Virus record (IMG/VR): IMGVR_UViG_3300005289_000052 | Location: 1 to 64,000 of that record | Length of the DNA stretch: 64,000 nt | Strand: one strand, 5' to 3' | Part shown: positions 10,860-45,745 of the stretch, one piece after another | Numbering within the stretch: position 1 is the stretch's first letter | Layout of the letters: the number at the start of each line of letters is the position of its first letter | The notes under the pieces: model-generated | Told to the model about the DNA's origin: nothing | The model's input: the letters and a program-made list of their open reading frames with translations, nothing else | Database searches by the model: none | Translations under genes and position numbers: made by a program

Positions 10860-11006
10860 GCCTTGCTCTCCGTGACGCAATGGTCAGCAACCAGTTCAGG
10901 AGCTTCCCACCACGCTTGTTCGTTTGCTCGAGGTTGGCGATTCGATCAGCCGTCACTACATCAAAGGTCCGATCGTACAATTTCTGACGTGGACTGCGAA
11001 AGTCCA

Positions 11007-22136: not shown

Positions 22137-22229
22137 CCGTTTAGCCCCATCAAAAATTTACTCCACATACTCTAAAGACCCCGTGTGATAATTAACTTAT
22201 CCTCTGAATGCCCCTTACGGATTAAGACA

Positions 22230-27160: not shown

Positions 27161-27168
27161 GGTGAACC

Positions 27169-30141: not shown

Positions 30142-30156
30142 TAAACAGGAAAGGTT

Positions 30157-31785
30157 ATGGGCACTATCATTGTTAAGTACCCGGAAGACCCGACGGGGAT
30201 CAACCCCAACAACCTGGTCATCAACGAGCCTCACGATCTTGGAGCAGGGCGCAATCGCGCCTTTGTTCCTAACTACGGTTCCTACTACACGGAGTCGATG
30301 ATCGTTACTGAGCTTGCGACCGGGCGGGTCCTCAAGAAGGGCGAGCACTACATCGCTGCACAGTTGCAACAAGAAGCCACGCTGGCGATGGACAAAGAGA
30401 TTTGTGCCGTTGTTGTCATCACTGACCCAAGCGTGCAAAACCAACTGCTGTTCACTTACCAAGTTGTTGGTGGTGTGTTCAGTACGTCGGTCTCTGCGTT
30501 GCAGAAAATGATCGAAGACCTCGATCTGGACGAACGGGCTGTTGAGTGGGGCGCCATCATTGGTAAGCCTACCGCATTCCCACCTGCTCCTCACCTTCAC
30601 GATATCGGCGACCTGTACGGTTTCGAATACCTCGTGGAAGCGTTGGATGCTCTGCGTAATGCTATCCTGATCGGCGACGAAGCCGCGCACGATGAATTGC
30701 GTCAGTACATCCAGTACGAGGATGGTCTCCTGCGTGCGTCGATTGCTGAGCTGAAAGGCCAGTTCGATGCTCACGCGCAGGACAAGAACAACCCGCACGG
30801 TACAACCAAAGCTCAGGTCGGACTCGGTTCGGTCGAGAACTACGGTATTGCTACCACCGCCGAGGCTCAGGCAGGCACTTCCAACGCGAAGTACATGACT
30901 CCTCTGCGTACTGCCGAAGCGATTGCTCAGCAAGCGTTGATTCCTCTGAACGCACACATTGCTGACAAGAACAACCCTCACCAAACCACCAAAGCCCAAG
31001 TTGGCTTAGGTAGTGTGGAGAACTACGGGGTTGCGACTACAGCAGAAGCACAAGCGGGTGTGAGTGACGTCAAGTACATGACGCCTTTGAAAACCAAAGA
31101 CGCCATTGCCCAACAAGCGCTCATCCCACTCAACGCTCACATCAACGATAAGAATAACCCCCACCAGACTACCAAAGCTCAGGTAGGGTTAGGCTCCGTT
31201 GAGAACTTTGCGTTGGCGACCACTGCGGAAGCCCAGGCGGGGACTTCGAACCTTAAGTACATGACACCTTTGCTCACTGCTCAGGCGATTGCACAGCAGG
31301 CTCTGATTCCCCTCAACAACCACATCGCGGATAAAAGCAACCCACACCAAACCACGAAGGCACAGGTTGGGTTGAGCGATGTAGACAACTTCGCAACGGC
31401 AACTACCGCAGAAGCTCAGGCTGGCGTTCTGAACACCAAGTTCATGACTCCCCTGCGGACCAAAGAAGCCATCGCCTTCCAAGTGGGTAACGCGCTGACT
31501 GCTCACTTGAACGACATGAACAACCCTCACAACACGACTAAAGCGCAAGTCGGTCTGAGTCTGATTCCTAACTCGATCACTCGTAGTCGGGCAACCAACT
31601 CTGACGGTTCGTTGCTTACTGCCGGGGGTATGTACGACCACGTCAACTCAGCAGACCACGATGCACGCTATGCACCGAAGAACACTGCGGGTGTAGATTG
31701 CTCTGTTCACTGGAACGGTAGTGGTGTGTACGTTTGGGGTGGTGGTGCTTGGCGTCAGGTATGGCCTGCTCAGTGGGCTGCGTAA
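30157..31785 (+). CDS. Tail-fibre-like protein 2 (phiKZ gp146-like)
   Basis: N-terminal YPEDPTG domain paralogous to 24638; 61-aa repeats; ends W.QVWP. Confidence 0.8.
   Translation: MGTIIVKYPEDPTGINPNNLVINEPHDLGAGRNRAFVPNYGSYYTESMIVTELATGRVLKKGEHYIAAQLQQEATLAMDKEICAVVVITDPSVQNQLLFTYQVVGGVFSTSVSALQKMIEDLDLDERAVEWGAIIGKPTAFPPAPHLHDIGDLYGFEYLVEALDALRNAILIGDEAAHDELRQYIQYEDGLLRASIAELKGQFDAHAQDKNNPHGTTKAQVGLGSVENYGIATTAEAQAGTSNAKYMTPLRTAEAIAQQALIPLNAHIADKNNPHQTTKAQVGLGSVENYGVATTAEAQAGVSDVKYMTPLKTKDAIAQQALIPLNAHINDKNNPHQTTKAQVGLGSVENFALATTAEAQAGTSNLKYMTPLLTAQAIAQQALIPLNNHIADKSNPHQTTKAQVGLSDVDNFATATTAEAQAGVLNTKFMTPLRTKEAIAFQVGNALTAHLNDMNNPHNTTKAQVGLSLIPNSITRSRATNSDGSLLTAGGMYDHVNSADHDARYAPKNTAGVDCSVHWNGSGVYVWGGGAWRQVWPAQWAA
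30772..31570 (+). repeat. 61-aa (183 bp) tandem repeats (4 full + 1 partial)
   Basis: H..DK.NPHQTTKAQVGLGSVEN..ATTAEAQAG....YMTPL.T..AIAQQALIPLN. Confidence 0.9.
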
Positions 31786-31838
31786 AAGTTTAGTGTAGAT
31801 GACAATGGTATAGATTTTCTATACGTGGGTGAAAAGAA

Positions 31839-32345
31839 ATGGGTAATGTGAGTGGCTCTTTATTTGGCTGTATCACAGAGTCTACCCTACAGGTAGACGA
31901 CATCCTTAGTAGTCCTTACCCCTATGAGCAACAGCTTGTAAAGATTCTCACAGGGGACATTGTCATTGACGCTATGAGTGTTTCAGATGTCTTGGAACAC
32001 TCAGACAAGGTCATCAAGATTGAAGGGATCGAGAAACTCAATCGATCCCTGTACCAAGCTTGCAAAGACCTAGCAGAGGTTATGGAACATGATGGGCCTA
32101 TTACTTGCCATCTGTTCCTGTCTCCTGCTGGGGGTAAGAGCTTTCCTTGGCACGATGATCCCGACGACGTGTACCTGTACATGGTCGAGGGTGCTAAAAC
32201 TATGGCTGTGGGCAACGAAGTCCATAAGCTGACCAAGTGGGACCATCTCTTCATTCCACGAGGCACGCAACATAGAGCTGTGAACTATCACGCCTCGAAG
32301 ATGCTAAGCTTTGGGTTGGAGCGATTCATTGCTGAGAAGCTCTGA
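31839..32345 (+). CDS. JmjC/cupin Fe(II)-2OG oxygenase (YcfD/ROX-like minimal domain)
   Basis: FPWHDDPDDVYL..EG.K and LFIPRGTQHRA give the HxD...H triad plus a 2OG-binding Lys. Confidence 0.85.
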   Translation: MGNVSGSLFGCITESTLQVDDILSSPYPYEQQLVKILTGDIVIDAMSVSDVLEHSDKVIKIEGIEKLNRSLYQACKDLAEVMEHDGPITCHLFLSPAGGKSFPWHDDPDDVYLYMVEGAKTMAVGNEVHKLTKWDHLFIPRGTQHRAVNYHASKMLSFGLERFIAEKL

Positions 32346-33379
32346 TGACCAAAACTATTTACGTCAAAACCACCGGTACCTGTAACCTTGCGTGCAAGCA
32401 TTGCTTCACCAACGGCAAGAACGGTGATCGTACCCAATTTGATCCAGTGCAGTTCGGTGACTGGATTGAAGAGTACATGTCCAAACACCCTAAAGGGACC
32501 GAGTACCACCTCGAGTTCCATGGTGGTGAACCCTTCCTTGTTCCACTCCCTAAGCTGATCCAGCTCGCGGATCGTTTTTATGACCGTGACGGGGTGTCGA
32601 TGTGCGCCAACAGCAACTTGACGTTTAAGTTGACTGAGGAACTCATCGCCTTTATTAAGCATTACTTCTACGGACACATTGGCACCAGTTGGGACCACTG
32701 GATTCGTTGGGGTAATCAAAAACAGTTTGACCTTTGGCGGTCGAACTTGAAAACCTTGCGTGAGCGTGATGTCTGCATCTATCTCAAGGTGTCGGTGAGT
32801 CGTGAGTTGATCAAGACCACACCGGACTGGTTCTTGGACCAGATCGAAAGCTTTGGGGTAACTGAGGTTTCGTTGGAGCGTCTAACGATGGACGGCAGTG
32901 CCAACGAGAACTTGGACATCTTCCCTAACAACGAGGAACAGGACAACTGGTACCTCGAGCTGTACAAGCGATACAAGCAACGCAAACTCAACTTCAAGAT
33001 CCGAACCCTCGACATCCTTGAGCAGAAGCTTAAGTACAACGTGGTGAAGGTGGACACCAACTGTCGCAACTGTGAACAGAATCTGGTGACCATCAACTCT
33101 AACGGGACTTTGGGTGGTTGTCCGAACGTGGCCTCTGCAAGACAGCATGCTCGTTTGGAAGAAGGGGCTGATGCGTTTCTCTCCTCGGATGCTCGGGTAG
33201 AAGAGATCGCTAAGGAATTGACTTGGGGTGATGGTTGCTTGAACTGTGACGTGTTCGACTTATGCGGTGGGGATTGCCATCGCTTGCCTTGGCAGAAGGG
33301 TCGCTGTGGTGGCCTTAAGAACACGCTGAGGTATTTGTCGGGCCGTTCCACACAATCCAATTTGATCCTGAAGGTGTGA
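32345..33379 (+). CDS. Radical SAM/SPASM protein 1
   Basis: CNLACKHC, FHGGEP; C-terminal CRNC, GGCPN, CLNCDVFDLCGGDC, C. Confidence 0.93.
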   Translation: MTKTIYVKTTGTCNLACKHCFTNGKNGDRTQFDPVQFGDWIEEYMSKHPKGTEYHLEFHGGEPFLVPLPKLIQLADRFYDRDGVSMCANSNLTFKLTEELIAFIKHYFYGHIGTSWDHWIRWGNQKQFDLWRSNLKTLRERDVCIYLKVSVSRELIKTTPDWFLDQIESFGVTEVSLERLTMDGSANENLDIFPNNEEQDNWYLELYKRYKQRKLNFKIRTLDILEQKLKYNVVKVDTNCRNCEQNLVTINSNGTLGGCPNVASARQHARLEEGADAFLSSDARVEEIAKELTWGDGCLNCDVFDLCGGDCHRLPWQKGRCGGLKNTLRYLSGRSTQSNLILKV

Positions 33380-33380
33380 A

Positions 33381-33935
33381 ATGACGGACATTACAAGACA
33401 GATGGTCGCTGACCAAGCGAACGCTGTGATTCGAGGGAACGCCAACGCCGGTATCTCGTGGGGGACGAACAGCTTCCCTGCTGGTGCCCTGGCTGGTTGG
33501 TTTGGTGGGTCGACTGCGGGTAACCCCGTAGCCCTCAGTGCTGGTAGCATTGCTGCTGGCAACCTTTCGGCATCGAACGTGTCAGCGGTACTGCGTAACT
33601 TCACCAACCAGTTTGCTGCGATTCGTCGTACGCGGATTGTGGTTTATTACGCTAAGAACTGGGGTGAGGATTACATCTACTCCGGTGTTGATGTGCGCGT
33701 GGACTCTACGGCTATTGCCTATACGGCGTATCCTGCTGGCAGTCCCGGTAACAACGCAGCACTCCCTGGCTTGGCGGCAGGGGCCACTGCCTCGTGGGGT
33801 AATATGGCGGCGTGTATCAACAACCTGTGGGCACAGTACAACGAGATGTGTCGTAACACCACGTTGACACTGACCAACACCATCTGTCACTCGAGCTGCC
33901 ACGACAACTGTCACTGCAACCGTGGGCGTCGTTAA
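33381..33935 (+). CDS. Putative substrate: small Ala/Gly/Asn-rich structural-like protein with a Cys/His-rich C-terminal tail
   Basis: Ends ICHSSCHDNCHCNRGRR; sits directly after rSAM 1. Confidence 0.65.
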   Translation: MTDITRQMVADQANAVIRGNANAGISWGTNSFPAGALAGWFGGSTAGNPVALSAGSIAAGNLSASNVSAVLRNFTNQFAAIRRTRIVVYYAKNWGEDYIYSGVDVRVDSTAIAYTAYPAGSPGNNAALPGLAAGATASWGNMAACINNLWAQYNEMCRNTTLTLTNTICHSSCHDNCHCNRGRR

Positions 33936-33945
33936 GGAGTCCTCA

Positions 33946-34692
33946 ATGTCTGAAGAAAAACCTCTGGTCCAAGTTGAGGTCACTGCTCCGATTCCTCTGG
34001 ACGTGCTCAAGCGCAAGTTCAAAGAGAACATCGAGTTCGTTATCGACTACGATGCGAGCAAGCTTAAGGGTAAGGTGTTGATCACCTACCTGAGCAACCT
34101 CAAGATCAAGTGTCGCCTGAAACTGACTGACCAGTCTGTTGCACTGGCGTTGGTGGAAGAGTACCTGAACATTCCGGTACTGGTCGATATGTCAGACCTT
34201 GAAGACTTGGCGATGGACATTCTGTTGGCCTACACAGGCAAGCCGAACCGCATCGCTGTGGACCTGTCTGACTTCTTCGTTCGTAACAAGGAAGCACTGG
34301 ACCGTTGGGTACGTCGTCTGTACTCCATTCCTCTGTACGCTTTGTGGTCGATGGAGCAGTACAAGTCCGAGGTAGAGAAATTCCCAGTGGACGAGGAAGA
34401 TACCATTGCTGGTGTCAACTTCGTGATGCTGATCGCTCACCCTGACTTTGCCGTCTTCATGGAAAACGTTCAAGAGGACCAATACACTTGGTGCCCAACG
34501 TTCTTCAAGGAGTACGTGTTCCAGGGTAGCAACCTCTTCAACTTCTTTGCTGACGAGCGCAACCCGTTCTTCGTGGGACTTCTGGCCATCCAGAGTCCTG
34601 AAATGTTTAACGAGATCGCACCGAAAGTCCAAAAGGCTTACGACGATTCCGTGGCCCTCATGAAAGGTATCGAGCATGTACCATCTCTTTAA
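33946..34692 (+). CDS. Hypothetical protein in the rSAM operon
   Basis: AGGAG RBS, start MSEEK, overlaps the next gene. Confidence 0.8.
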   Translation: MSEEKPLVQVEVTAPIPLDVLKRKFKENIEFVIDYDASKLKGKVLITYLSNLKIKCRLKLTDQSVALALVEEYLNIPVLVDMSDLEDLAMDILLAYTGKPNRIAVDLSDFFVRNKEALDRWVRRLYSIPLYALWSMEQYKSEVEKFPVDEEDTIAGVNFVMLIAHPDFAVFMENVQEDQYTWCPTFFKEYVFQGSNLFNFFADERNPFFVGLLAIQSPEMFNEIAPKVQKAYDDSVALMKGIEHVPSL

Positions 34693-35731
34693 CTCGGTGT
34701 ATGTAGACCTCGAGCGCCGCATCAACCGCACGGTCGACAACATCACCATCTCGCCGTACATTGGTCTGGAGTATTTCCCAGGCCAGAACGAAACTGCTGG
34801 TCGTCAGATCGGTTACGCCAAGACCATGGAATCGGTTGAACCCGAAGTCCTGATCGGCTGGTTCAAAGAAGCCATGCTGTCCAAAGAGAAGACCTTCATC
34901 TTCTGCGACGGCACCACCTACATGCGGTTGTACTCCATGTTGGTGAAAGCGGTACTGCCCAAGGTGGACCTCGAAACCTTCAAGTGGATCTGGCTCTGCA
35001 AGAAGGCAACCTTCAACACTTCGTTGACCAACTGGAAACAGCCTGGCAACAACGTGCTGGATGGTTTGGAGATCACCACCGAAACCGTCGAGATGATGTT
35101 CAACCTCGACGACCCTCATCAAGAGGCCTTCACTGCACTGCTCGCCGGTAACGACGATGTAGTCTCACTGGAGTGGCATATCCTGCGTCTGGCGGCTATC
35201 GGTTACGTGGGCATCGTTCCTAAGCGTCTGAAACACATCCTGCGTCGTATCGCTCTGGCGAACACTCATGATGCACTCGATGTTTGGGGTCGTGTGATCA
35301 CTGATCCTGAACACTGGGAATACGCTGGCGCTGACCGTGACACCCTGCTCGATGCTCCTAGTGTGTTCCAAGGTGCACTGAACCTTCACTTTACCAACAA
35401 CCCGATCTTCTTGAAGCCTGGGCTGTTCGTGAAGCATCCTCAAGATGCGTGGCTCTGCAACCTGCTGGAAGAACTGCACCCGTTGCTCGAGCGTGTAGGT
35501 GAGGGTCCAACTGCCAAGCGTACGTTGAAGATCCTGAGCTTCCTGCGAGACCTCAACCCGCTGTCCGATCCAGGTAAGTGTCTGGAACGCTGCCGTGACT
35601 TCTTTGTTGGTATTGATCGGCTGGCCATGCCAAACCGTGACTCCAGCAAGTACGACGAAAACCTGATCCGTTATATCCTCAGTCGTGACCAGGCAGATCT
35701 GGCACGCATGTTTGAAGGGGCAACTTGGTGA
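34676..35731 (+). CDS. Hypothetical protein in the rSAM operon
   Basis: 351 aa, overlaps both neighbours. Confidence 0.8.
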   Translation: MYHLFNSVYVDLERRINRTVDNITISPYIGLEYFPGQNETAGRQIGYAKTMESVEPEVLIGWFKEAMLSKEKTFIFCDGTTYMRLYSMLVKAVLPKVDLETFKWIWLCKKATFNTSLTNWKQPGNNVLDGLEITTETVEMMFNLDDPHQEAFTALLAGNDDVVSLEWHILRLAAIGYVGIVPKRLKHILRRIALANTHDALDVWGRVITDPEHWEYAGADRDTLLDAPSVFQGALNLHFTNNPIFLKPGLFVKHPQDAWLCNLLEELHPLLERVGEGPTAKRTLKILSFLRDLNPLSDPGKCLERCRDFFVGIDRLAMPNRDSSKYDENLIRYILSRDQADLARMFEGATW

Positions 35732-36735
35732 ATTTAATCCCGGTGGTAGACGTACTAGCGGACAAGAAAGGCGCAACGAAAGAAGCACACCTGATCTTGT
35801 TCGAGAAGTGTAACCTGCGTTGTTCGTTCTGCCACCAGGACCACGATTCAACCGTAGGTTTGGATGCGGATGAGATCATGCGTAAAGGGATCAGGCTCGT
35901 TGAGTCCTCAGACCTTGAAGCACCGATCGTTATCAACATCACTGGCGGCGAGTTGTTTACCGACGACATCGAAGACTGGATGTTTGGGTACTACCTGTCC
36001 TTGGGTGAGTACCTGCTGCAAAACTTCAAACGCGCTAAGATTGTCTACGGGACGAACTTGGTGTACGAGAAGGTATGGCGTGTCGAGCGACTGATGACCA
36101 TGTTGAGCGCTCATAGCTCTCCTAGTCAAGGGGTTAGCTTGTCGACGTCATACGACCCCGCAGGCCGGTTCAATCCAGCACAGCGGGAATTGTTCTTCAA
36201 GAACTTGGAACGGGTTGGCCTTTGGGTTGACACGGTAAACGTGGTAATCACTAAACAGAACATCGACGTCTTCCTGAACGACCGTGAGGGCGTTGAGGTG
36301 AAAGATCTGGCGTACGACTACGATCTGTATTTTGATCATTACATACCAAGCGAAAGATATGAAGAGCACCAACCTACTGAGTCACAGATCCGTCAACTCT
36401 ATTTGAAGCTGGCGAAGAAGTATCCTCTCTCGTATCCCATTGCCTCCTGGAAAAACCAGCAGTTCAATGAGACGACTTGTCGTTCCACCAAGATCATCAA
36501 CAAAGATGGTGTGGTGACTACGTGCTGGTCGGAAGCGGGGAAGGATGCGATCCTTGACGAAGGTGAAGGGTTGGTTGCTAAACAATCGGCGGAAGAACGG
36601 TTTATCGAACATTACGGGTGTTTGTCGTGTGAGTATTACCAACGCTGCGGTTTGCGTTGTTTCCTCCACCACAGCTTTATCGAAGGCTCTTCCACAGAGT
36701 GTGAGATCAAGCTCCTGTTCGACGAAATCTTGTAG
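35725..36735 (+). CDS. Radical SAM protein 2 (twitch/SPASM-like C-terminus)
   Basis: CNLRCSFC, ITGGELF, TTCRS, TTCW, CLSCEYYQRCGLRC, EC. Confidence 0.92.
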   Translation: MVNLIPVVDVLADKKGATKEAHLILFEKCNLRCSFCHQDHDSTVGLDADEIMRKGIRLVESSDLEAPIVINITGGELFTDDIEDWMFGYYLSLGEYLLQNFKRAKIVYGTNLVYEKVWRVERLMTMLSAHSSPSQGVSLSTSYDPAGRFNPAQRELFFKNLERVGLWVDTVNVVITKQNIDVFLNDREGVEVKDLAYDYDLYFDHYIPSERYEEHQPTESQIRQLYLKLAKKYPLSYPIASWKNQQFNETTCRSTKIINKDGVVTTCWSEAGKDAILDEGEGLVAKQSAEERFIEHYGCLSCEYYQRCGLRCFLHHSFIEGSSTECEIKLLFDEIL

Positions 36736-36741
36736 CCCAGG

Positions 36742-36774
36742 GCCGGTGGATAAAACCACCGGCTTTGTGCCGTC
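36742..36774 (+). terminator. Intra-operon hairpin followed by variant motif TTTGTGCCGTC
   Basis: GCCGGTGG-ATAAAA-CCACCGGC-TTTGTGCCGTC. Confidence 0.6.
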
Positions 36775-36788
36775 ACTAAGGGGTTAGT

Positions 36789-37877
36789 ATGGATCTCATT
36801 ATAAAGCCAACCGTGAAATGTAACTTCAAGTGCACGTTCTGTTCGAGCACGCACTTGTCAGAAGAACCGAAAGACATTGTCGAGTTGGCTGATATCGAAG
36901 CCTTCTTGAAGCGTTACCCCGACACCCGGACCATCATCGTTAACGGTGGTGATCCATTGATGATGCCACCCAAGTACTACTGGGACATGATCGAGATCCT
37001 AGACCGTTTGGACATGGACACTGTCATCTCCTTTACCACGAACCTGTGGGCGTTCTACAAGAAACCTGAACTGTGGGCTCCGTTGTTTAAGCTGGATCGG
37101 ATTGGTGTCAACACCTCGTTCCAGTACGGCGACAAACGTCTCAAGGGAGACGGTACTCCTCTGACTGAGGATGAGTTCATTGCGATCTCTGATCTGTTCT
37201 TGGAGAAGGTTGGGTATCGTCCAGACTTCATTGCGGTGATTGACCAAGACAACGTTGACACGGTCATCCCGACGGTAGAGTTGGCTAAGCGCCTAGGTCT
37301 GGAGGCGAAGATCAACTACGTCTCTGCATCTGGTCCTGAGGTTGTGAATCGCGGTGTGGTAATGGGGAGCATCAACAACTTCTACACTCAAGCTGACATG
37401 TACGAACAATACATCAAGATCTACGACGCAGGTCTGATGGAGTGGGAGTACAACACCAAGCAGATGTCTCGTCGCTTGAAGTTTGGTAACACGACTTGTC
37501 CTTTGGCCCGGTCCTGCGATGAAGGCATCCGTGCGTTACAACCTGGGCAGACGTACTTCTCTTGTGGTAGTTTCGGGGATGATGGCGAATACCCGATTGA
37601 CTTCCAGAAAGAGATGGCGGGTGAGTTCTTCACGCCTTTGCAAGTCGTTCCTGAATTGGATTCGATGAAAGATGCGTGCTACACCTGCCCGATGTTCAGC
37701 ATCTGTAATGGATGTCGTAAGACTGTGGCTGACACTAAACGCTTTGGACTCACGGAGTACCACTGCAAGAAGATGAAGTCACTTGCTCCACGCATCATCG
37801 AGATCAACGGCATGACGGGGTTGTTGGAACCCACCCCTTACGTTGATGAATCCGTCCAGATCATTGCAAGGGGCTAA
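36789..37877 (+). CDS. Radical SAM/SPASM protein 3 (anSME-like)
   Basis: IKPTVKCNFKCTFC, NGGDPLMM, CPLARSC, FSCG, CYTCPMFSICNGC, HC. Confidence 0.94.
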   Translation: MDLIIKPTVKCNFKCTFCSSTHLSEEPKDIVELADIEAFLKRYPDTRTIIVNGGDPLMMPPKYYWDMIEILDRLDMDTVISFTTNLWAFYKKPELWAPLFKLDRIGVNTSFQYGDKRLKGDGTPLTEDEFIAISDLFLEKVGYRPDFIAVIDQDNVDTVIPTVELAKRLGLEAKINYVSASGPEVVNRGVVMGSINNFYTQADMYEQYIKIYDAGLMEWEYNTKQMSRRLKFGNTTCPLARSCDEGIRALQPGQTYFSCGSFGDDGEYPIDFQKEMAGEFFTPLQVVPELDSMKDACYTCPMFSICNGCRKTVADTKRFGLTEYHCKKMKSLAPRIIEINGMTGLLEPTPYVDESVQIIARG

Positions 37878-37878
37878 C

Positions 37879-38070
37879 ATGGCCGCACTCACCGAAGAGC
37901 AGGCGTTCCTCCATATCCAGACCATCCTGCGTGACGAGATCGGTTACCTTCAACGTCAATATGCGCAACGTGGTCTTCAATACAACCCAATCGACATGGC
38001 CGAGTTCGAGAAACAGGTTCGTGAAAAGTTGGTTGATATCTTACTTGAATGTGGCGGGGTAGCTGTATGA
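37879..38070 (+). CDS. Small hypothetical protein in the rSAM operon
   Basis: 63 aa from MAALT; ATGA overlap with the next gene. Confidence 0.65.
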   Translation: MAALTEEQAFLHIQTILRDEIGYLQRQYAQRGLQYNPIDMAEFEKQVREKLVDILLECGGVAV

Positions 38071-38447
38071 CTCACGAAGTAAAAGACAATGTTCACCTGA
38101 TCCATGGATTGATTGACACTCAGACCGGTGCCGACCCAATCTGCGTCTACATCGACAAGGAAAGCTTGGTCGACATGTTGGAGGACATCGTTCACAACGT
38201 GGTGACAGTGCGTTACTGGATCAGCAGTAATCCGCTGAAGACTGTGGAGGAAGCAGACATGCAAACCCTCGAACAGGTCAACGGTTATCTGGATGCTGAG
38301 ATCCAACATCGTTACTCAGACATCACCGGTTACTTGTGGACCGATGAACACTTCAAGGTGGGTGGTCATGACCTGATCCCAATCTTTGAAGAGGCCGAAG
38401 AGAAGTACCTCCTACTGGAAATCACGGTCCATGAAAAGTCCGATTAA
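38067..38447 (+). CDS. Acidic hypothetical protein in the rSAM operon
   Basis: 126 aa from MTHEV; coupled on both sides. Confidence 0.75.
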   Translation: MTHEVKDNVHLIHGLIDTQTGADPICVYIDKESLVDMLEDIVHNVVTVRYWISSNPLKTVEEADMQTLEQVNGYLDAEIQHRYSDITGYLWTDEHFKVGGHDLIPIFEEAEEKYLLLEITVHEKSD

Positions 38448-39366
38448 CCTCAGTCTCAACCTGACCTACTACTGTAACTTCAAGTGTGAGTTCTGTTACC
38501 TCACGCCTGAACAGTTGCGAGATCGTCAACGTCTGCCTCTGGACATTCTGGAGCAGCAGCTAGACAAGGTCCTGGAGCAATACGACGTACATCACGTAGA
38601 CATCTACGGTGGTGAGGTCATGGTGTTGCCGAAGGACTATCTGTTCCAAGTGCGTGACATCCTTCATGCTCGAGGCATCGACGACCTGGTGTTGATCACT
38701 AACGGGTCTGTCCTCAACGAAGTAACCTCGTGTATGGACTTCGACCTGAGCATCTCCTACGACCTCACAGCGCGTGAGAGAAGCGATTGGGTACTGGGCA
38801 ACATCTTTATGCTCGATCGTCCCTTCTCGATGCTTACGCTGGCTTCTAGGAAGTTCCTGGACACGGTTACGCCTGACGACTACGTTCAAGAGCTGAACAT
38901 GCTCAATGGGATGAAGTGTGCAGAGATCAAACCGTACTCTTCAAACCAAGCCAACCAACAAAGCGTGAGTTACAAAGAGTTCGAGGACTTCGTTTGGGCT
39001 GTGATCAATCACCCTGATCGACAGTTCTACTTCGAGAACCGCACGCAAGTCAAAGAGGCGGCAGAAGGTAAGCGTAACGCTTATAGTGACGATCACCTGT
39101 ACATCACACCGAAGGGTGAGTTTGCAGTGCTCGAGTTCGATCACAACGACCATGAGTTCTTCTTAAGGATGGACTCCCTCCATGACTACCGTAACTGGTG
39201 TCAGGTCGAACGATTCCGTGTGGAGGGCAACCTGTTCTGCGGTGCGTGCCCTTACAAAGGAGGCTGCCTGTCGGAACACTTACGCGACGTGAAGTCCTTG
39301 GACAACTCCTGTAATGGATTCCGAGGACTCCTAGACAGGTGGGTAGAACATGCAGGTTCAACATAG
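38431..39366 (+). CDS. Radical SAM protein 4
   Basis: CNFKCEFC, IYGGEV, CGACPYKGGC, SC; start MKSPI. Confidence 0.92.
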   Translation: MKSPINLSLNLTYYCNFKCEFCYLTPEQLRDRQRLPLDILEQQLDKVLEQYDVHHVDIYGGEVMVLPKDYLFQVRDILHARGIDDLVLITNGSVLNEVTSCMDFDLSISYDLTARERSDWVLGNIFMLDRPFSMLTLASRKFLDTVTPDDYVQELNMLNGMKCAEIKPYSSNQANQQSVSYKEFEDFVWAVINHPDRQFYFENRTQVKEAAEGKRNAYSDDHLYITPKGEFAVLEFDHNDHEFFLRMDSLHDYRNWCQVERFRVEGNLFCGACPYKGGCLSEHLRDVKSLDNSCNGFRGLLDRWVEHAGST

Positions 39367-40354
39367 GCAGCGTTTGGAAATCACCCTCGATATCTTTCGG
39401 GGGTGTGGTCATCACTGTGTCGGGTGTATGATCGACAAACAGTTGGGTGGTGAGGTCAGCGACATTCCTGAACTACTCCAACTGATTGAGGAAATGACAG
39501 CCGTGGGTTACGTCGCCTTTGACTTAGGTGTCGGACCTACTGACTACATGTCCTCTGACAACGTTCAAGACGTGATGGGCAATGAGACCTTCCAAGCGAT
39601 GGCTCAACTGTTCCATCAGGTTACGTTCAACGCAGCGTTCTTGGAAAAGGATCTGGAGAAGTACGAAGCGATGTGCCAAGACATTGATCTGGCGTGTCCT
39701 GGTAAACCGATCCGCTTCCTGATCCCTGCTGCACCGACCTTCTTTAAGAACGAGAAGTTCGGCAACATGATCGTGCAGAAGCTCGAACACATCAAGGCCA
39801 CGTTCCAATCAGCGTTCCTCAATGAGGCAGGCTTTGTGGTGACGTGTAACCATGAAACGATGGACGAGAACTTTGACGCTAACATGCGCAATGGATTTGA
39901 TGTTGAGTTCCCTGTGGACAAAGACGACATCTTAAACATTCCGTATGGTCGTACCAAGAACCTTGACCTGATGGTGGGTCAACGGGTCAAGCGGGTCTCG
40001 CACCAGATCAGTGAGTTCTATGCAGGACTGGAAGGGGAAGACGAGCGTCGCAAGAACCCAGATTTGCACTACGACACAGGCACGATGGTTAACCTGTTGT
40101 ACACTGGTGGAAAGCTGTACTGGGTTCCCTTCCTTAAAGACGACTGTCCGTTCATACACGACGAGTTTGTCGTTCCGAGGCCCTGGACTATGGATAACCT
40201 TCTGCGCGTGCGTAACAGCGCTATGGAGCGTTCTGTGGAGTATCTCCAAGGCACCGAGTGTCTGAACTGTGTGCACTTCGCCAGTTGCATGGAGAAAGGC
40301 ATCAGTACCATCATGCAGAAGCTTTCGATTCGCGATTGCCTAGTGGGGTTGTGA
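39350..40354 (+). CDS. Non-canonical radical SAM-like protein 5
   Basis: CGHHCVGC, GVGPTD in place of GGE, C-terminal CLNCVHFASC..C. Confidence 0.75.
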   Translation: MQVQHRQRLEITLDIFRGCGHHCVGCMIDKQLGGEVSDIPELLQLIEEMTAVGYVAFDLGVGPTDYMSSDNVQDVMGNETFQAMAQLFHQVTFNAAFLEKDLEKYEAMCQDIDLACPGKPIRFLIPAAPTFFKNEKFGNMIVQKLEHIKATFQSAFLNEAGFVVTCNHETMDENFDANMRNGFDVEFPVDKDDILNIPYGRTKNLDLMVGQRVKRVSHQISEFYAGLEGEDERRKNPDLHYDTGTMVNLLYTGGKLYWVPFLKDDCPFIHDEFVVPRPWTMDNLLRVRNSAMERSVEYLQGTECLNCVHFASCMEKGISTIMQKLSIRDCLVGL

Positions 40355-41406
40355 TGTTTGCGCTCAGGATTTCCAAATCGTTTAACCTCTCCTTAGAAAT
40401 CCTTAAGGGGTGCGGGTTCAGTTGCCCTGGGTGTACAGTTGAGAAGAACTTTGCTCCCATGGAAATCCCAGAAGCAGACGCTCAGGCTCTGTTGGCTCTC
40501 GTGGATGAATTGAAAGCTGATGACTTCCGACTGTTGGAATTGAAGTTAGGTCCCACTGACATCACCAGCTCTGACAACGGCTTTGCAGCAATGCAACACC
40601 CGTTCGTTAAAGAGATGGCGTTACGGTACAAAGCTTTGAACATCAGCCACCCCATGCTTCATGATCGTGGGTTTGTGGAACTGGCTCAGTTGATTGATGA
40701 ACTGATCCCAGGTAAAAAGCTCAGCGTCGGTGTTCCAATGACGTTGAAGAATATACAGAACCCGAAATATATGGCGCTGGTTAAACAGCACATCGCGTTG
40801 TTCAAAAGTCTGCTTAAGAAAGTCGACTTCAACCGTGTGTATGCAACCTTCAACGTGATCGAAGACAACTTGGAGAACCTGTCCGTAGAGAGTTACGAGC
40901 AGGCACACCAGATGGATTTAGGTGACGTTGGGATTGTGGTGGAGTTTCCTTTCGCCCACTCTCGCCAAGGGATGGATAACTTGCTGGTGTTGGACAGATT
41001 CCGTCGGGACCTGTACCACTTCACCGAGTTCATTAAAGAACGGGCTAACACTAAAAGCTTTCGACCACTGCAACCTGCTGTGTTGAGCGGGATTGAGTTC
41101 ACGTACCGGGCTGGGTCTTTGTACTCTACTCCGGTGCTGGTTGAGAACTTGCCGATCTTCCATCCTGATTTCGAGTTACCCAAACCTTGGAGCGCATCTG
41201 AACTGATGTCGTTCTTGGAGAATCGTTACTACGATAACCTCATCGAGTTTGCAGACCACCCTGAGTGTGGGAACTGCTGCTTCCTCGACAACTGTGCTCG
41301 TGGTGATGTTCACCGCATCATGAAGCTGGTAGGACGTGACACCTGTCTGACTGGCACTAAGAACCGCTGGGACTTGATCCTAGTAGAGGATGGCCTGAAT
41401 GATTAA
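40354..41406 (+). CDS. Non-canonical radical SAM-like protein 6 (paralog of 5)
   Basis: CGFSCPGC, KLGPTD, C-terminal CGNCCFLDNC..C; TGATG overlap; start MFALR. Confidence 0.75.
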   Translation: MFALRISKSFNLSLEILKGCGFSCPGCTVEKNFAPMEIPEADAQALLALVDELKADDFRLLELKLGPTDITSSDNGFAAMQHPFVKEMALRYKALNISHPMLHDRGFVELAQLIDELIPGKKLSVGVPMTLKNIQNPKYMALVKQHIALFKSLLKKVDFNRVYATFNVIEDNLENLSVESYEQAHQMDLGDVGIVVEFPFAHSRQGMDNLLVLDRFRRDLYHFTEFIKERANTKSFRPLQPAVLSGIEFTYRAGSLYSTPVLVENLPIFHPDFELPKPWSASELMSFLENRYYDNLIEFADHPECGNCCFLDNCARGDVHRIMKLVGRDTCLTGTKNRWDLILVEDGLND

Positions 41407-41854
41407 CCCAAACGATTGCTTTGCGATCATGGATCACATACCGGTTCCAGAAGAAATGGAACTGTGGTGCATGTGTCAACCTGACAAAACCACTGTGGAC
41501 GATGATCGCATTGTCGATTACGTTTGGGACGTTCTGCTCCCCGCTCTGCGTAGCCTGCCAAACCATCCGATGGACTTGGCTAACATCCGACCGTGTGCTT
41601 ACCACGTCAATCTGTCCACCAACGGAGTAACGCCCCACAATCACTTACCGCACGCTTTAACGACGGTGCTGTACGTGACAGACGCTGATGGCGCTCTCGT
41701 CGTAGAACCGTGTTCTGAGAAGCCTCACAAGGTGTATCCGCGCCGTGGTCGCATGGTAGTGATGCACGGTTCAACTATGCATGGTGTTGAGCCTTCCTTC
41801 GACGAACAATTCCGCATCTCACTGGTCGTTAGCTATGAATTCCCAACCACATAA
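41399..41854 (+). CDS. Fe(II)/2OG oxygenase (TIGR02466-like)
   Basis: PHNH....TTVLYV, GRMVVMHG...HGV, RISLV. Confidence 0.8.
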   Translation: MINPNDCFAIMDHIPVPEEMELWCMCQPDKTTVDDDRIVDYVWDVLLPALRSLPNHPMDLANIRPCAYHVNLSTNGVTPHNHLPHALTTVLYVTDADGALVVEPCSEKPHKVYPRRGRMVVMHGSTMHGVEPSFDEQFRISLVVSYEFPTT

Positions 41855-42272
41855 GCAGTACCAAGAGCTGTACCAGATGGTGGTCACCGACCACACCGAT
41901 GACTTCTCTCTGATGGAGTTCGTTGAAGACGACGAACTGTTGGAGAATGCCAAGAACTACTTCCGTAAGGCTGAGTTCCCTCTGGTGTATCCGGCGAAGT
42001 CGATGGCCGTGGCTGTGATCTACGCCTTGCTGCTTGAAGAAACCTACGCCATCAATCCGTTTGACTCGTTGCGAGACTTGGATCTGTTCTTAGGACAGGA
42101 CCAATACTTCCACGTTTATGACGAACATCCAGAAGAGTACGATGCCTTGCTCGAATGGGTACTCAGTCACGAGAACTGGAAGGAGATGGGTTGGGCTCCG
42201 AAGACTGTGGAATACTTCCGACTGGAGTGTACCGCAGAAGGCATTCAGGAAGTCATGGAGAAACTTGGATGA
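41835..42272 (+). CDS. Acidic hypothetical protein in the rSAM operon
   Basis: 145 aa from MNSQP; coupled on both sides. Confidence 0.75.
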   Translation: MNSQPHKQYQELYQMVVTDHTDDFSLMEFVEDDELLENAKNYFRKAEFPLVYPAKSMAVAVIYALLLEETYAINPFDSLRDLDLFLGQDQYFHVYDEHPEEYDALLEWVLSHENWKEMGWAPKTVEYFRLECTAEGIQEVMEKLG

Positions 42273-42829
42273 ACATCATTCAACCGTGGGAAACACCAAT
42301 CGGTCACTCGAACTTTGGTCAGTGTCTGGACCTCACTGCTTTGAAAGACGAGATCGGTGCACTGGCGTTGATGTCTGATCAAGAGGACGGTGGACAGCGT
42401 TACGTCAACGACTACGACACCTTCCCCAACATCGTACACCTGTTGCGTGACATCATCGACCACGAAGTCAAAGACTACATCAAGAAGATGTGGGACTACG
42501 GGTTGGGTGAGTTCCGCCGTGAGACCAATGCGAAGTGGATTCCACCGGGAGAGGGCTTGTACCCGCACTACCATCCTGGCTCCCAAGTGTCGGCGATCTT
42601 CTACCCTGAGGACTCTCCTTCTGGCTTGGCGATGTTTGACCCTCGTGGTAATGCGTGTCGTGGCTATCCCAAACAGATCCGTAACCGTTACATGGCTCCG
42701 CACCTGATCTCTCCGGCAGCAGGTGATCTGTGGATCTTCCCTTCGTTCGTACAACACAGCGTCTCCTACGTGAAAGAGGATACGCGGCTTTCTATGTTGT
42801 GTGAATACTACTTCTCTGACGAGCGCTAA
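42269..42829 (+). CDS. Fe(II)/2OG oxygenase (TIGR02466-like)
   Basis: PHYHP..VSAIFYP, FDPR, GDLWIFPSFVQHSV, RLS. Confidence 0.88.
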   Translation: MNIIQPWETPIGHSNFGQCLDLTALKDEIGALALMSDQEDGGQRYVNDYDTFPNIVHLLRDIIDHEVKDYIKKMWDYGLGEFRRETNAKWIPPGEGLYPHYHPGSQVSAIFYPEDSPSGLAMFDPRGNACRGYPKQIRNRYMAPHLISPAAGDLWIFPSFVQHSVSYVKEDTRLSMLCEYYFSDER

Positions 42830-42831
42830 CC

Positions 42832-43386
42832 ATGCAACTTATCCAACCGTGGAACACGTCGATCCTCAAGGTCAACTTGGCCGACATCGTAAACCTCGAG
42901 GAGATCTCTCAAGAAATCCTCAACCTGCACTGCATCGCTCCGCAGGAATCGAAGACTGCGTACAAGGTGACTCCAGAAGAGTTCCCTGCTCTGTGCGACT
43001 TCCGTGATCGGGTTGTTACGAACCTGGTGAAGGAATACCTCAAGAAGACCATGGACTACGACTTGACCGACTTCACTGTCGACACGTTCGGTAAGTGGTT
43101 TGAAGCAGGTACTGATCTGGGTGCTCACGTTCATGGTAGTACCGGAGTCACTTCCGTGTTCTATCCTGCCGACTACGAGTCGGGTATGACCATCTACGAT
43201 CCACGTGGTAACGCTTCTCGTGGCTACCCGCGTGAGATTCGTGACTCGTATTTCTCGCCGTACTACCACGCTCCAAAAGCCGGTGATCTGCTGATCTTCC
43301 CTGGCTACTTGCAGCACTACGTTCCGACTGTAAAGGACGCACTGCGTCTGTCGTTGATCAACGACTACATGTTCAAGAGCGTCTAA
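42832..43386 (+). CDS. Fe(II)/2OG oxygenase (TIGR02466-like), tandem paralog
   Basis: AHVH..VTSVFYP, YDPR, GDLLIFPGYLQHYV, RLS. Confidence 0.88.
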   Translation: MQLIQPWNTSILKVNLADIVNLEEISQEILNLHCIAPQESKTAYKVTPEEFPALCDFRDRVVTNLVKEYLKKTMDYDLTDFTVDTFGKWFEAGTDLGAHVHGSTGVTSVFYPADYESGMTIYDPRGNASRGYPREIRDSYFSPYYHAPKAGDLLIFPGYLQHYVPTVKDALRLSLINDYMFKSV

Positions 43387-43388
43387 TA

Positions 43389-43421
43389 AGGGGAGGGCTT
43401 CGGCCCTCCTTTTATGCCGTC
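43389..43421 (+). terminator. Operon-ending terminator with trailing TTTTATGCCGTC
   Basis: GGAGGGC-TTCG-GCCCTCC-TTTTATGCCGTC. Confidence 0.88.
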
Positions 43422-43459
43422 AATCTTATGTAGACTTTCATTCCTCAAGGGGATGCCTT

Positions 43460-44137: not shown

Positions 44138-44146
44138 GGAAAAGTC

Positions 44147-45706: not shown

Positions 45707-45745
45707 CGGCATAAAGGGAGGGCCGAAGCCCTCCCGTTTATGCCC
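45706..45745. terminator. Bidirectional hairpin with GGCATAA/TTATGCC flanks
   Basis: ACGGCATAAA-GGGAGGGC-CGAA-GCCCTCCC-GTTTATGCCC. Confidence 0.85.

Follow-up and report, generated by a model that had tools for sequence, protein, structure and literature searches.

A Radical-SAM Operon in a Jumbo Phage and Its Candidate Cys/His-Tailed Substrate Protein

Introduction

Radical-SAM enzymes with a SPASM domain act on several kinds of peptides and proteins. The anaerobic sulfatase-maturating enzyme (anSME: AtsB/ChuR, PDB 4K36-4K39) is about 350–370 residues long, combines a radical-SAM core with a SPASM domain that holds two auxiliary clusters, has no RRE, and acts on a Cys or Ser of a whole protein within the motif C/S-x-P/A-x-R. 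Among the thioether-forming SPASM maturases, PapB (ranthipeptide) works on repeated Cys motifs, CteB makes a sactipeptide, and QhpD cross-links QhpC, a protein subunit that stays in the final complex. The three-residue cyclophane (triceptide) synthases link an aromatic ring to the β-carbon two residues on, and examples that modify His, HtkB and HaaB, have been described (PMC11499958). Ribosomal oxygenases of the JmjC_2 family (YcfD/RoxA, NO66, MINA53) hydroxylate Arg or His side chains of folded proteins. Phage particles are reinforced covalently in cases such as the HK97 capsid chainmail, and SDS-resistant fiber trimers are formed with Peptidase_S74 chaperones. The known cases are autocatalytic isopeptide bonds or noncovalent trimers, and no case is known to us of a virion protein matured by a battery of radical-SAM enzymes.

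The locus described here lies within a window of 64,000 nucleotides (positions 1 to 64,000 of IMG/VR record IMGVR_UViG_3300005289_000052). A sequence-only reading of positions 31839–43386 had proposed a 16-gene radical-SAM/oxygenase operon that modifies a virion protein. No paper was found that characterizes this system.

Results

Organization of the Operon. The proposed gene content was confirmed. Positions 31839–43386 form one tight operon on the + strand that encodes six CxxxCxxC radical-SAM proteins, one JmjC/cupin oxygenase, three 2OG oxygenases, four or five unknowns, and a 184-residue protein with a Cys/His tail. There are 15 solid genes (g1–g15) plus one doubtful small ORF, rather than 16 genes. 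Several ORF starts lie later than the longest ORF suggests (g4, 33946; g9, 38431; g11, 40354; g13, 41835 or 41877; g14, 42269). With sensible starts the gene junctions are –1, 1, 10, –17, –7, 53, 171, –17, –17, –1, –8, –20, –4, and 2 nt. The value of 171 nt becomes an overlap if the doubtful ORF is real.

A baseplate assembly gene (22185–22988) lies upstream, and three tail-fiber-like virion genes (24638–31785, + strand) lie directly upstream. The PHROG hits of the latter are to tail, tail-fiber, and virion structural families, with E values down to 1e-175. A PG_binding plus lysozyme-like gene (43460–44137, + strand) and a phiKZ internal-head protein lie downstream. The former was matched by PG_binding_1 at 1e-4, phrog_4928 at 6.5e-69, and phrog_196 (baseplate hub) at 2.5e-45.

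Radical-SAM Proteins. Protein g2 (32345–33379, 344 residues) is a radical-SAM/SPASM enzyme with no N-terminal RRE. The motif CNLACKHC starts at residue 13, and eight further Cys are invariant in the family. Its best NCBIfam hits are anSME (1.6e-12) and PapB (4.5e-12), all far below the family cutoffs. The family profile hits anSME (4K36-39), 8VPO, and CteB in the PDB. Protein g6 (35725–36735, 336 residues) carries CNLRCSFC plus the canonical CX9GX4C and CX2CX5CX3C motifs and is a paralogue of g2, g7, and g9 (hhalign probability 97–99%). Protein g7 (36789–37877, 362 residues) is the best-conserved gene product, at 52–82% identity across phiKZ-like, Rak2-like, and other viral contigs. It carries CNFKCTFC and 8 conserved auxiliary Cys, scores 44.2 bits for Pfam Radical_SAM, and its family profile aligns over its full length to anSME. 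Proteins g2, g6, and g7 keep 7–8 further conserved C-terminal Cys, which is a full SPASM pattern.

Proteins g9, g10, and g11 keep a partial CX2CX5C...C set of the twitch-like kind. Four of these Cys are conserved family-wide in g9 and g11, and more are conserved in the small g10 family. Protein g9 (38431–39366, 311 residues from the ATG; the ORF opens at 38386) carries CNFKCEFC and a conserved C285, C288, C294, H298, C309 set, scores 35.3 bits for Pfam Radical_SAM, and is present in 52 viral loci. Protein g10 (39350–40354, 334 residues) is a divergent accessory CxxxCxxC protein that carries CGHHCVGC and has no Pfam hit. It is a paralogue of g11 (hhalign probability 100%). Protein g11 (40354–41406, 350 residues from the ATG; the ORF opens at 40258) is likewise divergent and carries CGFSCPGC and four conserved C-terminal Cys. 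The g10/g11 family occurs in 21 viral loci and many Bdellovibrionota loci. The CxxxCxxC motif is placed at residues 11–30 in these enzymes.

Oxygenases. Protein g1 (31839–32345, 168 residues), a cupin/JmjC-type Fe(II)/2OG oxygenase, passes the Pfam thresholds for Cupin_2 (32.4 bits; GA 27.2) and JmjC_2 (29.1 bits; GA 22). H105-x-D107...H145 and K120 are conserved in at least 90% of 41 homologues, and the family is present in 44 viral loci. The lineage-specific 2OG-Fe(II) oxygenase g12 (41399–41854, 151 residues) passes PF13640 marginally (27.3 against GA 27) and has a conserved HxH...H...R pattern. Proteins g14 (42269–42829, 186 residues) and g15 (42832–43386, 184 residues) are paralogues of the PF13759 type, with scores of 40.4 and 35.5 bits, respectively. 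The start of g14 is an ATGA overlap with g13. In g15, which is core in phages, the H99, H101, H162, R172 pattern is conserved. The g12/14/15 cluster occurs in 47 viral loci. The earlier description of the 2OG oxygenases as TIGR02466-like is only loosely true, with scores of 28.6 and 16 against a cutoff of 62.5.

Proteins of Unknown Function. Protein g4 (33946–34692, 248 residues, acidic) matches phrog_20767 at 8.9e-39. The AF2 model has a pLDDT of 92, and Foldseek (best E 0.26) and a profile search returned no PDB match. The gene follows g3 in 45 viral loci and many bacterial loci, and an AAGGAG ribosome-binding site precedes its ATG. Protein g5 (34676–35731, 351 residues) has no hit in Pfam, NCBIfam, or PHROGs. 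A family HMM finds it in 44 viral loci and in Bdellovibrionota loci. Protein g13 (41835–42272, about 131–145 residues, acidic) matches phrog_20737 at 1.1e-32 and is present in 50 viral loci and in bacterial loci. The small acidic protein g8 (38049–38447, 132 residues) has no family hit, and homologues occur only in the two closest contigs, L004 and L005. The doubtful 75-residue ORF (37843–38070, + strand) has a TTG start, no family hit, and no homologue outside the identical contig L030.

The Cys/His-Tailed Protein. Protein g3 (33381–33935, 184 residues) has no Pfam or NCBIfam model, and HMMER finds 828 representatives at 50% identity. AF2 predicts a confident compact domain covering residues 1–168 (pLDDT 87, pTM 0.81) with the last ~15 residues disordered, meaning an accessible tail. 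Foldseek returned no PDB match, and the predicted fold is taken as new. The C-terminal 16 residues (33885–33932) read CHSS-CHDN-CHCN-RGRR. The Cys, His, and Arg positions are identical in 83–84 of 84 unique homologues, while synonymous codons are used about 50/50. The mean pairwise identity is about 80% for the last 16 residues against about 25% for the body. Of 232 retrieved homologues, 215 end in exactly three CHxx repeats plus RxRR. The CHxxCHxxCH DNA pattern occurs once in the 64-kb window, against 0 in 100 shuffles. No other protein in the window carries a comparable conserved motif.

Distribution of the Cassette. The sequence-only reading had stated that it would fail if the enzymes did not co-occur with the Cys/His-tailed gene in other genomes. 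They do co-occur. A search with g7 gave 53 viral loci, and g3 is present in all 45 whose upstream region is covered. A search with the tail DNA pattern alone gave 47 genome loci, against a rough uniform-base estimate of about 0.15 expected by chance. About 38 of these, which are bacterial and mostly chromosomes of predatory Bdellovibrionota, hold g3-like ORFs flanked by homologues of g2, g4, g5, g6, g7, g9, g11, and g13. The core cassette recurs in about 50 viral contigs and consists of the cupin, a radical-SAM protein, the tail protein, g4, g5, three more radical-SAM proteins, g13, and a 2OG oxygenase. In the bacterial loci the radical-SAM-centered core often lacks the oxygenases.

The cluster lies in tail-fiber or baseplate modules in three phage lineages, and often beside fiber proteins with Peptidase_S74 chaperone domains in phages and Bdellovibrionota. 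The system is not phage-specific. It sits in Bdellovibrionota chromosomes next to housekeeping genes. Other loci add B12-binding radical-SAM genes and extra 2OG oxygenases, which are typical tailoring enzymes. Tandem g3 copies occur in five loci, as is common for modified precursors.

Virion Proteomics of a Distant Homologue. In Agrobacterium phage Atu_ph07 the g3 homologue is gp170, whose computed mass of 31.89 kDa is identical to the value in the published table (PMC6102473, Table S5). It was detected in purified virions with 8 peptides and 35% coverage. After SDS treatment at 95 °C it was most abundant in band 1, the top gel band, where proteins of about 87–137 kDa peak. The enzyme homologues gp165–169, gp171, and gp172 were not detected. 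This evidence comes from one phage whose g3 homologue is only about 22–25% identical, and a peak in the top band could also reflect noncovalent, SDS-resistant fiber complexes or aggregation. Migration of a structural protein far above its monomer mass is shared with the reinforced particles and fiber trimers described above.

Comparison with Described Systems. anSME is the best NCBIfam and PDB match of g2 and g7, with near full-length alignment, the same size, and the same build without an RRE. The scores are far below the family cutoff (47 and 33 bits against 349), the sulfatase motif is absent (the tail reads C-H-x-S-R), there are four to six paralogues rather than one enzyme, and no sulfatase is present. 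The thioether-forming maturases are the second-best hits (PapB, 4.5e-12; CteB, 5WGG in the PDB search; QhpD family, 4.9e-5). The family cutoffs are not reached (45.9 against 340), no RRE domain is present, the repeat has no acidic acceptor residue, and the candidate substrate is a 184-residue folded protein with a predicted novel fold.

The g3 tail holds three H-x-S/N units, the kind of motif on which the cyclophane synthases act, and weak hits to YhhB, AmcB, FxsB, and HxsB/HxsC of the triceptide and His-Xaa-Ser (Hxs) systems were obtained. All scores are far below cutoffs (for example, 39.9 against 445 and 25 against 370). A Cys precedes every His, which triceptide motifs lack, g3 gives no hit to HxsA, and the precursor is a protein rather than a short peptide. 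With the JmjC_2 oxygenases, g1 shares the HxD...H iron triad, and Arg and His dominate the g3 tail. However, g1 is a bare cupin of only 168 residues without the winged-helix and dimerization domains, and its substrate is untested.

Discussion

The interpretation offered by the sequence-only reading, a pathway that cross-links or decorates a tail appendage or releases a modified peptide, is supported in part. The best candidate substrate is the tail protein g3, not the fibers. No RRE, protease, or exporter was found, and the system therefore resembles protein maturation of the anSME or QhpD style more than a classical RiPP. The suggested siderophore or receptor mimicry remains pure speculation. 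The argument that no nucleotide genes are present is slightly weakened by two genuine DHFR genes inserted in the cluster of the Ralstonia/Burkholderia (RSF1/FLC/SURPRISE13) lineage.

The most probable reading, to which a probability of about 0.6 is assigned, is that the operon is a dedicated post-translational maturation pathway for g3. In this view, g3 folds into a compact domain and exposes a flexible 16-residue tail, (C-H-x-S)x3-R-G-R-R. The three Cys-His units would be acted upon by four paralogous, RRE-less, anSME-like radical-SAM enzymes (g2, g6, and g7 with full SPASM domains, and g9 with a reduced one), and in this lineage also by the divergent pair g10/g11. The likely chemistry is H-atom abstraction that yields thioether and/or His-to-Cβ type cross-links, or Cys/Ser oxidation. 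Hydroxylations, plausibly on His or Arg, would be added by g1, g12, g14, and g15, while g4, g5, and g13 would serve as noncatalytic partners that present the tail. The matured protein would stay intact and be built into the virion with the tail-fiber/baseplate apparatus as an SDS- and heat-resistant, probably covalently linked, species.

The gene content, the catalytic motifs, the nearly invariant tail, and the co-occurrence rest on the sequences analyzed here, whereas virion presence and anomalous gel migration rest on a distant homologue alone. That the tail is the substrate, what the chemistry is, and what the product does are inferred. No mass shift or cross-link has been observed for any family member. 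Four to six radical-SAM enzymes for 16 residues is unusually many, and some may act elsewhere. Proteins g3, g4, g5, and g13 have no detectable relatives, so their roles are guesses. Radical-SAM enzymes and O2-dependent oxygenases in one pathway need compatible conditions. Bdellovibrionota make no virions, so a virion component cannot be the whole story. The extreme protein-level constraint on the tail while the body drifts, the co-occurrence in both directions, and the alignment of the enzymes with the protein- and peptide-modifying SPASM clade support the proposed pathway, as do the predicted accessible tail, the virion data for gp170, the tail-fiber and baseplate context, the additional tailoring enzymes in other loci, and the tandem g3 copies.

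A classical RiPP or cofactor route is possible but unlikely. Here g3 would be a precursor with an unusually large leader domain, and the modified 12–16-residue tail would be released as a small metal-binding peptide, antibiotic, or redox cofactor used during infection or predation. A conserved C-terminal core on a variable body resembles the PQQ and mycofactocin precursors, tandem copies occur, three Cys-His pairs form an obvious metal-binding set, His-containing cross-linked peptides are made by radical-SAM enzymes (PMC11499958), and presence in nonviral Bdellovibrionota chromosomes fits a diffusible product. Against this route, no protease, exporter, or RRE was found in the window or in the conserved core, the “leader” is a confidently predicted folded domain of 170 residues, the homologue is present in virions at high apparent mass, and the terminal RGRR is conserved.

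It is slightly less likely that g3 is a helper of the radical-SAM enzymes, for example an Fe–S or metal carrier or an electron donor that uses its Cys/His tail, and that the real target is another molecule such as the adjacent fibers or a host protein. Three Cys plus three His could ligate a cluster or metal, phages rich in radical-SAM genes carry Fe–S assembly genes (PMC5332604), and fiber genes lie nearby. However, a carrier would not be expected in virions at high apparent mass, the RGRR end and the count of three repeats fit a recognition or core sequence better, no similarity to IscU, NfuA, or ferredoxins was found, and no other protein in the window carries a conserved motif comparable to the tail.

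Modification of DNA or nucleotides, or synthesis of a small metabolite, with g3 as an unrelated neighbor, is very unlikely: although radical-SAM enzymes take part in phage base hypermodification (PMC8989533), the DHFR genes lie inside the cluster of one lineage, and a GT8-like gene adjoins some bacterial loci, no kinase, thymidylate-synthase-like, glycosylase, or nucleotide-binding domain occurs in the core, SPASM enzymes without other domains typically act on peptides or proteins, the DHFR genes are absent from all other lineages, and the g3 tail is the most conserved feature of the whole locus and was not separated from the enzymes in the covered viral loci.

Organization of the Gene Cluster

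The window comes from a phiKZ-like jumbo phage, and a phiKZ internal-head-protein domain is found at 44147-45706. Over g7 it is 100% identical to the 243,669-bp IMG/VR contig UViG_3300005289_000052. The nearest isolate is Pseudomonas phage pPa_SNUABM_DT01, which shows about 72% nucleotide identity over only 1 kb but carries a syntenic cluster. Positions 31839-43386 hold 15 solid genes on the + strand, which overlap or sit within 10 nt of each other apart from gaps of 53 and 171 nt, and one doubtful 75-aa ORF. The gene content matches that described in the sequence-only reading. Six proteins carry CxxxCxxC (g2, g6, g7, g9, g10, and g11), g1 is a cupin/JmjC protein, g12, g14, and g15 are 2OG oxygenases, and g4, g5, g8, and g13 are unknowns. 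The remaining protein, g3 (33381-33935), has 184 residues and ends in CHSS-CHDN-CHCN-RGRR.

A baseplate assembly gene and three tail-fiber-like genes lie upstream, and a PG_binding/lysozyme-like gene lies downstream. The three consecutive fiber-like genes (24638-31785) share the same repeated module, with 4-5 matched stretches each to the same PHROGs, which suggests a paralogous fiber set. The long antisense ORFs across them are probably not genes. A scan for sigma-70 promoters and terminators gave fewer sites than shuffled sequences and is uninformative because phiKZ-like phages use their own polymerases. Across 29500-46000, 3 promoter-like matches were found against 10.2 +/- 3.2 in shuffles, which fits transcription by the phage's own RNA polymerases.

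Assignment of the Enzymes

The CxxxCxxC motif, which binds the SAM-cleaving [4Fe-4S] cluster near the N-terminus, is present in g2, g6, g7, g9, g10, and g11 and is conserved in at least 90% of each family. Against the Pfam gathering threshold for Radical_SAM (PF04055; 29.5 bits), g7 (44.2 bits) and g9 (35.3 bits) pass, g2 (28.3 bits) falls just below but passes Fer4_12, g6 scores 17.9 bits, and g10 and g11 give no hit, a mixed outcome that does not settle by score alone whether the six belong together in this superfamily. The proteins g2, g6, g7, and g9 are paralogues (hhalign probability 96-99%), and g10 and g11 form a second, more divergent pair.

The seven-Cys SPASM pattern for two auxiliary clusters, CX9-15GX4C ... 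CX2CX5CX3C ... C, is present and conserved in g2, g6, and g7 (g7 has CX2CX5CX2C). Only the second half, a CX2CX5C...C part, is kept in g9, g10, and g11. The score of g2 against the SPASM model TIGR04085 is 26.1 against a cut-off of 27. The radical-SAM motif starts at residues 11-30 in these proteins (residue 52 in the longest g11 ORF, about 20 from the ATG at 40354), which leaves no room for an N-terminal RRE (PqqD-like) domain, and no PqqD hit was found.

The best matches of these enzymes are anSME, the ranthipeptide maturase PapB, cyclophane synthases, DynA/DarE, and the PDB entries 4K36-39, 8VPO, CteB, ChlB, and YydG. Assignment to anSME, PapB/CteB, the triceptide/Hxs system, or the CXXX-repeat system was considered and rejected because the scores are 5-20 times below the family cut-offs. 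For anSME (TIGR03942; cut-off of 349 bits), g2 scores 47.2 bits and g7 33.1 bits. No sulfatase gene and no C/S-x-P/A-x-R target motif occurs in the operon, and the tail of g3 reads C-H-x-S-R. For the ranthipeptide and sactipeptide maturases (PapB NF047865; CteB), the score is 45.9 against 340 and the RRE is absent. For the triceptide cyclophane synthases and the Hxs system (NF041707, TIGR04269, TIGR03978, TIGR03977, TIGR03979), the enzyme scores are 39.9/445, 31.1/370, 25.2/370, and 23.3/268. Precursors of these systems carry repeats of an aromatic or His residue followed by x-x; g3 gives no hit to HxsA, although the H-x-S/N unit does occur three times in its tail. For the CXXX-repeat peptide system (TIGR04115; cut-off of 350 bits), g6 scores 16.6 bits, although the tail is formally three CXXX units. 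The enzymes are therefore new families inside the protein/peptide-modifying SPASM clade. In build they are closest to anSME, an enzyme that acts on whole proteins.

The g1 protein passes the Pfam thresholds of both JmjC_2 (PF08007; 29.1 bits, GA 22) and Cupin_2 (PF07883; 32.4 bits, GA 27.2), and H105, D107, and H145 of the HxD...H iron triad are conserved. The description of the 2OG oxygenases as TIGR02466-like does not hold at the family cut-off of 62.5 bits, since g14 scores 28.6 and g15 16.0. Both pass the broader Pfam family PF13759 (40.4 and 35.5 against 27). No Pfam or NCBIfam hit was obtained for g4, g5, g8, or g13. An hhalign comparison among all families showed that g3, g4, g5, and g13 have no relatives within the operon, and g5 is therefore not a detectable degenerate radical-SAM protein.

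The Conserved Tail of g3

A search of IMG/VR with g7 returned 53 viral loci. Failure of the enzymes to accompany the Cys/His-tailed gene in other genomes had been specified in advance as grounds for abandoning the proposal, and in every one of the 45 loci whose upstream region is covered, a g3 homologue sits between g2 and g4. Apparent inserts of 0.3-0.5 kb in the g7 homologues are HSP merges with the next paralogue, not introns or inteins, and the ORF lengths are normal.

The bodies of the g3 homologues are about 25% identical, whereas the last 16 residues follow (V/I)-C-H-x-S-C-H-x-S/N-C-H-x-S-R-G/S-R-R-stop almost without exception. In 84 unique proteins the Cys, His, and Arg positions are kept in 83-84, while the codons are used about 50/50, so that the constraint acts on the protein and not on the DNA. 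About half of these 84 proteins were themselves retrieved through the tail pattern, and the viral set found through g7 is the independent one. An exhaustive HMMER search of 1.84 billion representatives found 828 family members (clusters at 50% identity) at E <= 1e-3. Of 232 retrieved sequences, 215 end in exactly three CHxx repeats plus RxRR. The CHxxCHxxCH pattern occurs only once in the window.

The g3 family has no Pfam or NCBIfam model, and every source calls it hypothetical. AlphaFold gives a confident compact alpha/beta domain for g3 (pLDDT 87, pTM 0.81) with the tail disordered. Sequence and profile searches of g3 and g4 against the PDB, and Foldseek searches of the confident AF2 models against the PDB, found nothing, so both are new folds. 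A search of BFVD returned only uncharacterized family members. Among the BFVD hits, three larger proteins of 504-660 aa from "Myoviridae sp. ctijX18" (A0A8S5USJ8, A0A8S5USV2, and A0A8S5USJ7) contain the g3-like fold, and the domain can therefore be fused to bigger, possibly fiber-like, proteins.

Distribution of the Cassette

With family HMMs, the core in phages comprises the g1 cupin, g2, g3, g4, g5, g6, g7, g9, g13, and a PF13759 oxygenase, each present in 44-52 loci. The g8 and g12 genes are lineage additions, and g10/g11 occur in 21 of the viral loci. The cassette occurs in phiKZ-like phages (this window, DT01, and the Ralstonia RSF1/RSL2 and Burkholderia FLC/S13 group), in the Rak2-like 490-kb Agrobacterium phage Atu_ph07 and Sinorhizobium phage Phosso, and in many uncultured large phages. 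A g3 homologue that is 77% identical to that of the window is labeled "Streptomyces sp. CHB9.2" in NCBI. It sits on a 241,743-bp contig, the size of this phage, and the GC content of the window (about 51%) is unlike Streptomyces. This is probably a jumbo-phage genome hidden in a bacterial assembly.

The cassette is not only viral. One genome per prokaryotic species was scanned for the DNA pattern that encodes the tail plus a stop codon, and 47 loci were returned, where a rough uniform-base estimate puts chance matches at about 0.15. About 38 of these are true g3-like ORFs surrounded by homologues of g2, g4, g5, g6, g7, g9, g10/11, and g13. The other nine have no g3-like ORF and are probably chance matches; several lie in high-GC actinobacterial or betaproteobacterial genomes. 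Most of the true loci are in Bdellovibrionota MAGs from Bacteriovoracaceae, Halobacteriovoraceae, and Pseudobdellovibrionaceae, and some lie on contigs of 1.3-2.8 Mb. Three extended loci show the housekeeping neighbors DctP, ribosomal protein L25, PRPP synthetase, and peptidyl-tRNA hydrolase and show no phage hallmark genes. In a g7 tree, nine Bdellovibrionota sequences and one from a Flavobacteriaceae MAG form one clade (support 92/92) nested among viral clades, which indicates horizontal exchange. The oxygenases are often missing in the bacterial loci, so the radical-SAM steps are the essential part.

Association with Virions and Fibers

The published virion proteome of Atu_ph07 lists gp170 with 8 unique peptides and 35% coverage in gel bands 1-9, most abundant in band 1 (PMC6102473, Table S5). 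This protein is the g3 homologue; it has 296 residues, and its computed mass of 31.89 kDa equals the value in the table. In that gel, proteins of about 30 kDa peak in bands 7-8, and bands 1-2 hold proteins of roughly 77-137 kDa. Therefore, gp170 runs as an SDS- and 95 °C-resistant high-mass species. Detection in purified particles is shown only for this homologue, no proteome being available for the window's phage, and the FLC6 list of "structural proteins" is based on annotation. The enzyme homologues gp165-169, gp171, and gp172 are absent from the Atu_ph07 list, while the fiber-like neighbors gp176 and gp177 are present.

The cluster lies beside fiber genes in all three phage lineages, and several of these neighboring fibers carry the Peptidase_S74 intramolecular-chaperone domain. 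In at least six Bdellovibrionota loci the cassette adjoins S74-domain proteins (L105:15752-18864 and L106:5653-7406; also L061, L067, L070, L083, and L102). In the three that were read, these proteins start with a pilin-like hydrophobic N-terminus (one gives an N_methyl hit just below threshold), and the Peptidase_S74 domain lies toward the C-terminus. They are paired with a conserved 209-aa protein of unknown function.

Proposed Function

The most likely mechanism is that the radical-SAM enzymes modify the exposed Cys-His repeats of g3 and that the oxygenases add hydroxyl groups, with g4, g5, and g13 assisting. The matured protein would then be built into the fiber/baseplate apparatus as a cross-linked unit. 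The gene content, the conserved motifs, the tail, and its linkage to the enzymes were observed directly, whereas modification of the tail and the role of the product are inferred. A probability of about 0.6 is assigned to a pathway that modifies the g3 tail with a product that stays on a structural protein, and much less to any single chemistry, which is not readable from sequence. Three kinds of reaction fit what relatives of these enzymes do: formation of thioether rings, as made by PapB, CteB, and QhpD; formation of His-to-C-beta cyclophanes on the three H-x-S/N units, for which His-specific radical-SAM cyclophane synthases exist (PMC11499958); and oxidation of Cys or Ser to formylglycine, as done by anSME. 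JmjC_2 relatives hydroxylate His and Arg in proteins, and these residues dominate the tail. The earlier proposal of a RiPP-like system that modifies a virion protein is supported in part.

With respect to a general RiPP pathway, a conserved C-terminal core and strict co-occurrence with modifying enzymes are present, but the "leader" is a folded 170-aa domain, and these features together do not decide whether g3 is a precursor in this sense. No protease or transporter family hit occurs in any operon gene with Pfam, NCBIfam, or PHROGs, although four or five genes remain without an assigned function. Release of a modified peptide or cofactor is accordingly considered unlikely, given the absence of a detected protease, exporter, or RRE, the folded leader, and the homologue in virions. 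A role of g3 as a metal or Fe-S helper for enzymes that act elsewhere is slightly less likely still and is hard to square with its presence in virions and with the invariant RGRR end. Modification of DNA or of a metabolite is very improbable, the only support being two DHFR genes inserted in one lineage.

A more far-reaching reading, which is doubtful but compatible with the data, is that jumbo phages of unrelated lineages and predatory Bdellovibrionota share one horizontally exchanged module. In this view a battery of radical-SAM enzymes turns the (Cys-His-x-Ser)x3-RGRR end of a small new-fold protein into a cross-linked, possibly metal-bearing or reactive structure. This structure would work together with S74-type fibers at the surface of the attacker, either as a covalent lock of the fiber/baseplate apparatus or as a warhead for binding or breaching Gram-negative envelopes. 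If so, this would be the first radical-SAM-matured structural component of a virus particle and a new protein-derived cross-link or cofactor.

Radical-SAM/SPASM enzymes mature peptides and a few enzymes but are not known to mature virus particles. The general principle, SPASM radical-SAM maturation of a ribosomal product, is established, whereas the substrate family, the enzyme families, and the setting, a virion protein shared with predatory bacteria, appear to be new. Literature searches found only gene lists and no functional study; papers on DT01, FLC6, S13, RP12/RP31, and marine T4-like genomes list these genes or guess at "DNA repair/host metabolism". The very large, unannotated g3 family carries one of the most rigidly conserved short tails that we have seen and is always linked to four or more radical-SAM enzymes, and one member has been found in virions at an anomalous mass. 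Solving the chemistry would probably reveal new cross-links or a protein-derived cofactor. It would explain why many jumbo phages carry 4-12 radical-SAM genes, which papers currently dismiss as "DNA repair/host metabolism", and it would connect phage tail-fiber biology with the prey-attack machinery of predatory bacteria.

Variation among Related Loci

In Burkholderia phage SURPRISE13 (L002:8855-10032), two genuine DHFR genes (Pfam DHFR_1, 158.6 and 74.4 bits) are inserted between the g6 and g7 homologues of the cassette. The same layout occurs in the RSF1/RSL2/FLC phages, and no other lineage has these genes. Other lineages add further 2OG oxygenases, and B12-binding radical-SAM genes of the class B methyltransferase type accompany the cassette in some viral and bacterial loci (L023:6947-8719 and L104:18258-20105) but not in the window. 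In the Pseudobdellovibrionaceae locus L104, a g2 paralogue (10659-11690; HMM E 3e-68) that has lost the CxxxCxxC motif sits between g3 and g4 and may be a non-catalytic substrate-binding copy. A 467-517-aa protein with a weak glycosyltransferase family 8 signature lies next to the cassette in three bacterial loci (L106:19225-20625, with homologues in L087 and L095).

The g3 gene itself also varies. On a Dysosmobacter segnis contig (L085:3907-4266; the ORF is cut by the contig end), a g3-like protein has many more CHxS repeats than usual (15 Cys in 119 residues) before the usual RGRR end. The loci L086 and L094 have four repeats, and almost all others have exactly three. Tandem duplicated g3 genes are carried by L064, L072, L074, L084, and L101, and the copies of the Rhodobacteraceae "Water_Bin34" are unusually short (125-140 aa).
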